From Guillardia theta CCMP2712 (taxonomy: Eukaryota; Protista; Cryptophyta), in NCBI RefSeq assembly GCF_000315625.1, contig NW_005434660.1, positions 742,738 through 806,737 of the forward strand: DNA of 64,000 nucleotides, written 5' to 3'. The notes below the pieces were generated by a model that was not told the origin of the DNA, did not search any database, and saw only the letters and a program-made list of their open reading frames with translations. Shown here piece after piece: positions 58,620 to 61,600 of the stretch. Each line of letters begins with the position of its first letter. Position 1 is the first letter of the stretch. Made by a program: the position numbers and the translations under genes.

Positions 58620-61600
58620 ATGTCACGGACATTGAACGCATGTCTGCTCTTCCTCAACGTGGTTGTGATCTCCATGGAAGACAGCAAGGAGGTCTGTCAC
58701 AGAAATACGTTTGTTCTTGTCGCCCCTTCACAAGGGCCTTCGGCAAGAACACCCGGCAGCGTCTTGGTGTCATCCCGATGCAGAGCACCTAGTATTCCTC
58801 GGGGGATCGACTTCGCCCTGCGTTTGAGGGGAGGGAGTGCGGCAGGCGACGTGGAGGTGGTTGAGCAGCGTGTGCAGCTGCTTCTCACACCTCATGTGAA
58901 GGCCCGAACATCTCGACTGGACGGACTGGTCAAGGTCCAAGGAGAGGATCAGATTGTGAAGCGGAGGGGGAGGATGCGGAAGGAGGACTCGACTGAGCAG
59001 GTGCTGCCTGCCATGATGGGGCTCCCTGAATCGCTGAGAGGATCTCAGGTCAAGAAGAGGCTGAACAAGCTCAACACTCTCCTCCAGAGGTTTTGACCTC
59101 TTTCCACTCACTCGCAGCATCTGTCCACTTGCTCCTTTACACCCCTTGGCTGCTTCCATACTTCCAGTACCTGCTCTTGCCCTCTACACTACAGGGGCCG
59201 CGCCTTGTCTCATCCATCTCCCTTGTCTTACAGGGCGGCCGCGTACTCGACGTTCCTTCGCGAAAGATTGCAAGAGTCTCGCTCGGAAGCCGATGCCAAG
59301 TTGTCTTCACACTACCTCGTCTCTGCTCCTTCTACCTCTGCCCCTTCAGCCTCCACAACCCCTCCATGTGCTCCAGCACCTGCTCTTGCTCTTGCTCCCA
59401 CTGGTTTCCTTCCGTTATCTCCTTCTAAGGCAGCTGATTAGGAAGCTAAACCTGCCGGCAAGCAACCAAAACGCGACGAAGGATGAAAGGCAGCCGAAGC
59501 TGTTAACGGGAGCAGTGATGAGACAGTGAGTGTGCAGAGACTGGGGGATGTGGTTTAGGAGGAAAGGGAGGAGGAGGAGGAGGAGGAGGATAGGAGATGT
59601 GAATGAGTGAGTGAGAATGGAATTGACGTCCTCTGCAGCTATCAGATCGATGGAGTGCAGTGGCTGATTTCGCTATATGAGGTGAGGACGAGCACGAGGA
59701 AGAGGAAGAGGAAGAGGAAGAGGAAGAGGAAGAGGAAGAGGAAGAGGAAGGAGACAAGAAAGGGTAGATCGCTGAGGAGGGAACAGAGGGGCCAAACGAG
59801 GAACGAGGACAAGGAAGGAGGAAGGAGGAGGACAAGGAAGGAGGAAGGAGGAGGAGGCATCTTTGATAGATGAATCAGAATGGTTTGAACGGCATCCTCG
59901 CTGACGAGATGGGGTTGGGAAAGACGATCCAGGTGAGAAGAGCGCATTCGTGATGACTGCTGTGATGACTGATGACTCCCGACAGGTCATCGCATTTCTT
60001 GCTCACTTGTGGGAAATGAAGGTAAGTCTCGTCCTCGTCCTCGTCCTCGTCCTCGTCCTCGTCCTCGTCCTCGTCCTCGTCCTCGTCCTCGTCCTCGTCC
60101 TCGTCCTCCTTGTTCTTTTTCACCACCCCATCACACCCGCCTCTCCTCCTCTTCGCTCTTCTTCTCCTTGTCCTCTTCCGTGTCCTTTATTTCTATTTTC
60201 ATTTTTCCTTACTCTTCCTGCTTTTGTCAGCTTCTTTCTCACCCTTCATGTCCTTGCACCTCTTTTCTCTCCAATCTTCGTTTCTCACCGTGTCTGTCAG
60301 GTCCATGGACCTTTTCTTGTCGTTGCCCCACTGTCTACGATAGGTGAAACAGGAGGAGGCAAGGAGGAAGAGGAAGAGGGAGAGGGAGAGGAAGAGGAAG
60401 AGGAAGAGGGAGAGGAAGAGGGAGAGGGAGAGGATGTGGACTGGGATGAAGACGGGGACAGAATGCACACTTACATGGTTCTTCAGGCAACTGGCAGAAT
60501 GAGTTCAAACGCTTTGCTCCTGATCTTCCTGTTCTCCTGTACCATGGCAGCAAGGATGAGCGCAAAGTAATCATCCTGACAGTGTTACTTTCTCCCCTTG
60601 TTTCGTTTTCATACCTTGCTCTGCATCCTCGTCCTCGCTCTTGTCCCCCTTCGATACCACTTCGTCATCCTCCCAGTCGTCCTCTTCTCTCGCTCCGCTT
60701 CTCTTCCACACAGCACAGATACTAACTCTTGCACCAATCCTCCTCTTTCTTCTTCACCACCTCCTCCTCTTCCTCGTCCCCATTGTCGTCGTCGCTTACT
60801 ATCGTCTTCAGGAGCTCCGGAAGCAGCATCTCAAGCATCGGGCCAAGGAGTTTCCGATCGTCATCACGTCCTTTGAAGTGAGCCAAAGGACATCAGTCCT
60901 CGGCGCAGCCACTGAAATGTCCGGCAGATCGTCATGAACGACGCAAAGAGTCTCTCGCAGTACCGATGGAAATACCTCACGGTTGACGAAGGTCATCGCA
61001 TCAAGAACAAGGTGACGTGTTTTCCTCTCCTGCGAACCTCTTCCTCCTTTCCTCACCTGCCCTTGTCTCCTCCTCCTCCAACTCACCTTGGCATCCCCTT
61101 GTCCTCTCCTCTTTTCATCTTCCCTCAACCTCCTCCTTACCCCTCTCACTCTCCATGTCAGCATCTGACCTTGATCCTCTTCTAGGATTGCAAACTCCTC
61201 AGGGAGTTGAAAGCTCTCAACGCAGGCAACAGGCTGCTGCTCACCGGGACTCCGTTACAGGTTTCCTTGTCCCTTCAACTTGCTCTCTTCCTCACATGAT
61301 CCACACTGCGTGTCCTCCCTTCCTTCCGCTCTCCTCCCTTCCTTCCGCTCTCCTCCCTTCCTTCCGCTCTCCTCCCTTGCCACCCTTCTGCTCACTTCCC
61401 TCTACCTTGTCAACAGAACAATCTCAGCGAGCTCTGGTCGCTCCTCAACTTTATCTTACCGGAGATCTTCGACGATCTCTCGACCTTCCAAGCTTGGTTC
61501 AACTTCGAGGAAGAGCTGACGGACAGCCAGGGGGCGGCCAAGATCATGCTGCAGGTACGTGCGAGGAGGCGAGAGCTGCGCTGGTCACGACGTGCTTGCA

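Follow-up and report, generated by a model that had tools for sequence, protein, structure and literature searches.

A 64,000-nucleotide stretch of the Guillardia theta CCMP2712 genome (contig NW_005434660.1, positions 742,738 to 806,737, here called the window) carries GUITHDRAFT_103852 (NCBI protein model P0001), a gene whose product begins with a leader that ends in LRLRGG, the C-terminal hexapeptide of ubiquitin. By its sequence, the product is a chromatin remodeller of the HELLS/DDM1-type SNF2 family. The conservation of the motif across cryptophyte genera is new here, and the motif is not described in the literature that we searched. We propose that the leader may be a bipartite periplastid signal closed by a mimic of the ubiquitin tail and cleaved after Gly-Gly by a ubiquitin-tail protease, a reading of the sequence that we consider evenly balanced between right and wrong. 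GUITHDRAFT_103852 looks like a well-supported instance of an apparently general cryptophyte leader design.

What does the leader consist of? The first-pass annotation, made from the letters of the window alone, had described a hydrophobic N-terminus and a Ser/Pro/Arg-rich stretch running into an exact LRLRGG. Reading frame and composition bear this out. The open reading frame (ORF) spans 58620..59096 (+), and the motif lies at 58818-58835 (codons CTG CGT TTG AGG GGA GGG). Transcript evidence comes from Logan contigs of two RNA runs, X1 and X2 (the library type is a guess), aligned over 58385-59690, and from a complete MMETSP ORF of 741 amino acids (P0002). The parts of the leader are as follows (↓ below marks a plausible or proposed cut).

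58620..58676 (+): signal-peptide-like N-terminus, with n-region MSR and an h-region of 16 uncharged residues (hydropathy)
58677..58817 (+): transit-peptide-like linker, Ser/Pro/Arg-rich, net positive, unconserved between species (composition, ortholog leaders)
58812..58835 (+): ubiquitin-tail-like F-A-L-R-L-R-G-G, with the probable leader/mature boundary after GG (sequence, X1/X2 contigs, conservation)
58836..58856 (+): first residues past GG, SAAGDVE, at the end of the exon (X1/X2 contigs, P0002)

The spliced X1 and X2 contigs both retain ATG 58620 and LRLRGG. This ATG is the first in-frame one after an in-frame stop located 26 codons upstream in the mRNA; because of that stop, the reading frame cannot be extended further 5′. 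A 20-exon model in which all introns are GT-AG gives a translation identical to P0002. The contigs, P0002, and the upstream stop together indicate that ATG 58620 opens the frame, that the leader is expressed, and that LRLRGG is not spliced out.

Hydropathy and charge layout are the two properties from which we infer signal-peptide function. The highest 12-residue Kyte-Doolittle mean is 2.62 in the leader-bearing HELLS, 2.05 in the signal peptide of cpeA, and 0.38 in the host-type HELLS paralog, so the annotated hydrophobicity of the N-terminus does match a known signal peptide, and it may function as one. The control, cpeA (phycoerythrin alpha), served for both signal-peptide hydropathy and the rule of Phe at +1, and lies in the window itself at 56762-57163. 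This corresponds to 8143-8544 (-) of the locus that we analyzed, L001 (JH992978.1 791357-816437; window coordinate = L001 coordinate + 48619). Its leader is a textbook cryptophyte plastid leader, MLARSVAFAGLVASAAA↓FSPS. In the HELLS leader, both plausible signal cuts, VIS↓M and ISM↓E, would leave a non-aromatic residue at +1; the cpeA cut is AAA↓F. The linker that follows (residues 20-72, 53 amino acids) contains seven Ser, five Pro, seven Arg, and four Ala and has a net charge of +4.

No Pfam family was found in residues 1-140 at E values up to 0.1, nor any ubiquitin family in exon 1 at E values up to 1. At the sequence level, then, no ubiquitin fold precedes the motif, just as had been claimed. 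A degenerate ubiquitin domain in the leader was considered and ruled out by this Pfam result and by the length of the 53-residue linker.

Conservation of the motif in orthologs and in a neighboring gene

How widely is the motif kept among cryptophytes? We looked for orthologs by using the N-terminal 175 residues as the query of a word search and by one metagenome scan, and recognized orthologs of the leader-bearing copy by the signature of their N-terminal helix, where host-type copies have LLQKAAAYTAFLRQRMKE. Leader-bearing orthologs were found in four other cryptophyte lineages, namely Rhodomonas salina, a Baffinella-like lineage, and two environmental ones, with these leader ends:

Environmental P0268 (contigs L003-L005): ...ASRVLRCKGG↓GDAAV
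P0271 and P0272 (matching the Baffinella frigidus model P0270): ...GRVVLRCRGG↓ADAAV
Rhodomonas salina P0269 (5′-truncated model): ...RQQLRLRGG↓GQED
Environmental contig L007 (probable first exon): start MAAATAGVLLWLLLGETALAGSG, leader end ...LMLGRLRGG↓EEKR

A leader end of the form L-R-[LC]-[RK]-G-G is reported for 4/4 of these lineages, while the remaining leader is unconserved. Because the motif is kept while the rest of the leader drifts, it appears to be under selection; on this comparison it is a selected part of the leader, and the earlier suggestion that the ubiquitin-tail motif is meaningful is strengthened by its persistence in other cryptophytes. The exact ubiquitin hexapeptide LRLRGG occurs in two lineages, G. 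theta and Rhodomonas; the variants in HELLS leaders are LRCRGG, LRCKGG, and GRLRGG. A hydrophobic N-terminus, with hydropathy of 2.2-2.9, is found in three of the four ortholog lineages, which are all those with a complete 5′ end. For Hanusia phi, a look-up of the HELLS fragment P0003 returned no record, and the comparison includes no Hanusia leader of this gene. In an exhaustive search of representative sequences, query residues 1-80 were not covered by any relative; the closest cluster other than the query's own was a host-type cryptophyte HELLS.

The same leader design recurs in the unrelated gene immediately downstream, which encodes a CTLH/GID8-type protein at L001 15204-16328 (-), equivalent to window coordinates 63823-64947 and partly past the window end. 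Read from the genomic ORF alone, its long frame holds a hydrophobic stretch (CLRLIFLGTLAVCSTTLFSG) and a Pro/Arg-rich linker, followed by ...PVLNLRGG↓AEDATMND. The Hanusia phi GID8 ortholog (P0121) retains the motif in ...HRLSLRGG↓AEDETMDD, with different preceding residues. With the GID8 variants LNLRGG and LSLRGG included, all leaders anchored on Gly-Gly (7/7, HELLS and GID8) read L-[RNS]-[LC]-[RK]-G-G at positions -5 to 0, and no conservation is seen upstream. The public GID8 model (223 amino acids) begins 151 residues downstream and so does not include the leader. Of three gene models considered in this work, two have an incorrect N-terminus.

Gene structure, protein family, and the host-type copy

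The annotation had placed the leader in a single first exon. The motif is in frame as proposed; the exon that holds it, however, is the second of the mRNA, starts at 58576 in the X1/X2 contigs, and belongs to a stretch interrupted by two mini-introns. Likewise, the residues after GG do begin with SAAGDVE, but the continuation after splicing of the mini-intron is ARTSRLD and differs from the version first read. Within 58385-59690, the X1/X2 contigs reveal five introns beyond that of the 5′ untranslated region (UTR), two of them being the in-frame mini-introns. The remaining features of the gene are as follows.

58163..58240 (+): 5′ UTR exon of at least 78 nt; the loose end of the X1/X2 contigs at 58574 matches window 58210-58239; four ATGs of short upstream ORFs (18, 8, 3, and 5 codons)
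58241..58575 (+): 5′ UTR intron, GT..AG, with (CCT)n and (GACCTC)n microsatellites (X1/X2 contigs)
58857..58901 (+): mini-intron of 45 nt, in frame, kept in the NCBI model (joint in X1 and X2; P0001 versus P0002)
59001..59048 (+): mini-intron of 48 nt, in frame (X1/X2 contigs)
58902-59000, 59049-59089, and 59234-59299 (+): exons encoding the KRRGRMRK basic patch and the N-terminal helix, the leader-paralog signature (aligns to HELLS residue 139 onward)
59442..63700 (+): last 16 exons, with the SNF2 ATPase N-lobe, the helicase C lobe, and the C-terminal tail; stop at 63698-63700 (20-exon model identical to P0002; Pfam)

The NCBI model of GUITHDRAFT_103852 (703 amino acids) is wrong in three places where P0002 (741 amino acids) agrees with the RNA contigs: it retains 58857-58901, skips exons 59234-59299 and 59442-59525, and mismatches near 62440-62463. 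Very short introns of 45-53 nt lie at 58857-58901, 59001-59048, 59933-59985, 60878-60927, and 61555-61601; two of them are in frame and stop-free and therefore appear as coding sequence in an ORF scan. Hexamer microsatellites occur in many other introns of the gene.

The assignment of the protein to HELLS/DDM1, made in the first-pass annotation, is upheld by Pfam, structure matches, named matches, and tree placement. Pfam finds SNF2-rel_dom (1.6e-90, residues 177-480) and Helicase_C (4.7e-28, residues 503-616), and the PDB matches are human HELLS (9z04, 580 bits), Arabidopsis DDM1 (7ux9, 544), ISWI (460), and SNF2 (451). The named database matches are lymphoid-specific helicases. In the best stretch against HELLS 9z04, query residue 89 falls onto chain residue 139 and the alignment runs onward from there, so the N-terminal helical region before the ATPase is present.

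A second, leaderless copy serving the host had been predicted, and we found it as GUITHDRAFT_158768 (P0009), a host-type HELLS without a leader. Its ORF, on a second locus (L002, 9440-11161), opens at 9440 with MSDFSCFGSSSGLKKFFAKEEDKQ, which is acidic and Lys-rich and has no hydrophobic stretch. The public model of this gene lacks the first ~187 residues; the restored N-terminus is 86% identical to Hanusia P0010. Acidic N-termini without a leader are found in the host-type copies of five cryptophytes, with Hanusia, Baffinella, and three cryptophyte-like sequences all alike. In phylogenetic trees, in whose representatives red algal sequences are not identifiable, the leader-bearing copies form one clade and group with chlorarachniophyte HELLS (Shimodaira-Hasegawa-like approximate likelihood ratio test [SH-aLRT] 94-96); together these form the sister group of the cryptophyte host-type copies (SH-aLRT 99). 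Simple monophyly of the cryptophyte sequences was not rejected by the approximately unbiased test (p = 0.07). The HELLS of the chlorarachniophyte Amorphochlora amoebiformis (P0014, residues 1-60) has a signal-peptide-like start, MAPRRRFGWLGLMVLAYVMTL, and KKSRGG↓ETSEG directly before the conserved helix.

Proposed import and processing, and the rival explanations

How might such a leader work? The bipartite leader, an endoplasmic reticulum (ER) signal peptide followed by a basic, Ser/Pro/Arg-rich linker, would send the second HELLS/DDM1 into the periplastid compartment and from there on to the nucleomorph, the sole chromatin in that space. It would be closed by a mimic of the ubiquitin C terminus, [VA]-L-R-[LC]-[RK]-G-G, marking the leader/mature boundary. 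During co-translational entry into the ER this cut site would be hidden from the host's cytosolic enzymes, to be exposed only after passage through SELMA, the ubiquitin-dependent translocon of the periplastid space. A periplastid ubiquitin-tail protease (deubiquitinase- or ULP-like, reading Leu/Cys at P4, Gly at P2, and Gly at P1) would then cut after GG and free the mature enzyme. The periplastid/nucleomorph destination is suggested by the cryptophyte targeting rule and by the nature of the cargo; cleavage after GG and the class of the enzyme are suggested by the motif, whose conserved positions correspond to ubiquitin L71, L73, R74, G75, and G76. These are the residues that deubiquitinases and LXGG-specific proteases read in the extended tail.

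Which enzyme could be responsible? The cryptophyte periplastid space holds 26S proteasomes and a ubiquitin system of its own (PMC5756292), and a "TPL peptidase" for periplastid proteins has been postulated, its identity left unspecified (Cavalier-Smith 2017, PMC5756292). The diatom periplastid deubiquitinase ptDUP is reported to be absent from cryptophytes, where some other enzyme is anticipated (Pietluch et al. 2025, PMC12412216), so the processing enzyme would have to be another one. Of the original proposal that a DDM1 is imported to the nucleomorph and its leader cut at a ubiquitin-mimic site, the identity of the protein, the expression of the leader, and the conservation of the motif have held up; import to the nucleomorph and the cut itself stay putative. 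To the wider idea of a new presequence-processing system, in which L-x-[LC]-[RK]-G-G leaders would be removed after SELMA import and the "TPL peptidase" would be the enzyme that replaces ptDUP, we give slightly less than even weight.

Could LRLRGG be a functionless chance hexapeptide in a fast-evolving N-terminal extension? The motif is short, and it was picked post hoc by a reader seeking oddities. It is nonetheless kept across five lineages of orthologs and also in a neighbor gene of another family, while its flanks diverge. When 73.7 kb are translated in six frames, L.LRGG has two matches, both behind a Met and a hydrophobic leader; the other 29 permutations of its letters have seven matches, none of them behind such a leader. 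Among 262 control HELLS-family proteins (204,298 residues), [LC][RK]GG occurs three times, or ~1.5e-5 per residue, and just one of the three falls within the first 160 residues, in a truncated model's ATPase domain. We therefore give the chance explanation hardly any weight. A third window match, to [LM]RGG at 45709-45720 (-), was set aside as non-coding because it is antisense to an E3-ligase ORF, and a random second locus (L002, 22 kb) held no further case of a leader with LRGG.

Several points weigh against a periplastid leader cleaved after GG, and some of them feed two other explanations. One is that the protein is not periplastid: the N-terminus could be a signal anchor or an ER signal for another destination, or translation could start at Met19, a possible alternative start whose product would have no signal peptide and would be an N-terminally extended protein of the host nucleus or cytosol. 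Four upstream ATGs precede ATG 58620, the start context is weak, and neither VIS↓M nor ISM↓E is a textbook signal cleavage site; periplastid prediction in G. theta is uncertain where that site is unclear (Gile et al. 2015, PMC4494062). In addition, the raw RNA run X14 has no reads on 58385-59690, and transcript 5′ ends are thus represented by assembled contigs rather than mapped. However, the N-terminus is hydrophobic in each ortholog whose 5′ end is complete, the linker resembles a transit peptide, the host nucleus is already served by the separate host-type copy, and the ER offers no substrate to a DNA-dependent remodeller. A destination outside the periplastid compartment is, on balance, improbable.

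The other explanation accepts that the motif is selected but not that it is a deubiquitinase site. It could instead act in sorting or retention, recognized by SELMA or ubiquitin-binding factors or halting onward plastid import, or it could be the site of an M16-type (MPP/SPP-like) peptidase. Conservation shows function, not a mechanism. M16 presequence peptidases prefer Arg at -2 or -3, and all leaders have Arg/Lys at -3 from the proposed cut, which would suit them, with small residues after it. Most deubiquitinases require the ubiquitin fold; since that fold is absent from the leader, a specialized enzyme must be assumed if a ubiquitin-tail protease is to act, and the absence of ptDUP from cryptophytes favors this other explanation. 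The replacement of ubiquitin R72 by N or S in the GID8 leaders also tells against the proposed cleavage. On the other hand, M16 sites do not normally come with a fixed Gly-Gly or a Leu at positions -4 and -6, ubiquitin-tail proteases read precisely the positions that are conserved, and the exact ubiquitin hexapeptide occurs in two lineages. We consider a sorting or M16 role for the motif less likely than not, yet the main rival to the proposed ubiquitin-tail cleavage.

Significance and comparison with known systems

For the removal of leaders from proteins resident in the periplastid compartment, the motif offers a candidate cut site, concrete and open to mutation, together with a class of candidate enzymes. 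In the literature that we searched, we found no processing site defined for periplastid leaders; in its full texts (subscription-only papers lay outside this scope), no paper connects LRGG, LRLRGG, or di-glycine to periplastid, Guillardia, or plastid in such a sense. Sequence-based prediction of the periplastid/nucleomorph proteome has been considered unreliable (reviewers' exchange in PMC4822330; PMC4494062). A motif at the leader/mature junction would be a simple sequence marker for periplastid proteins and, if the proposal is true, a direct one for an estimated periplastid proteome of 2,400 proteins, including a nucleomorph-directed HELLS. Periplastid forms of aspRS3 and glyRS2 have been predicted (PMC4494062), and an algal-type Rae1 has been reported in cryptophytes (PMC6411479). 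As to chromatin biology, the finding suggests that the nucleomorph, whose genome encodes little chromatin machinery, may have a HELLS/DDM1 remodeller dedicated to it; no genes for DNA methyltransferases were found in nucleomorph genomes (Marinov and Lynch 2016, PMC4822330).

With HELLS of vertebrates and DDM1 of plants, the leader-bearing copy shares the SNF2 N-lobe, the helicase C lobe, the N-terminal helical region, and its tree clade. Unlike them, it adds an N-terminal targeting leader, and the long, acidic stretch at the N-terminus of cryptophyte host-type copies is missing from it. The periplastid bipartite signals of cryptophytes and diatoms combine a signal peptide with a transit-peptide-like region lacking an aromatic residue at +1 (Gould et al. 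2006, cited by PMC4494062 and PMC5756292). The HELLS leader resembles them in its hydrophobic N-terminus, its basic, hydroxylated linker, and, should either plausible signal cut be correct, the non-aromatic residue after it, and its cargo is likewise of cytosolic/nuclear type with a separate host copy. It differs from the described periplastid leaders in being closed by a fixed ubiquitin-tail motif.

How does this ending compare with established cleavage sites? Natural ubiquitin fusions (polyubiquitin, Ub-eL40, and Ub-eS31) are cut after G76 by deubiquitinases. As in these precursors, LRLRGG stands directly upstream of the presumed mature protein, with small residues after GG; unlike them, the leader has no beta-grasp fold and instead has a signal peptide and a disordered-looking linker upstream. 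Recognition of the tail without the ubiquitin body is known from coronavirus papain-like proteases, which cut at LXGG sites, and from some deubiquitinase/ULP-type proteases. The leader shares with LXGG sites the conservation of P4 (Leu/Cys), P2 Gly, and P1 Gly, but it is a cellular targeting leader rather than a viral polyprotein, and its protease is hypothetical. Finally, the leaders agree with MPP/SPP (M16) presequence sites in the basic residue three positions before the proposed cut and the small residue after it, and they depart from such sites in their invariant Gly-Gly and in Leu at -4 and -6.

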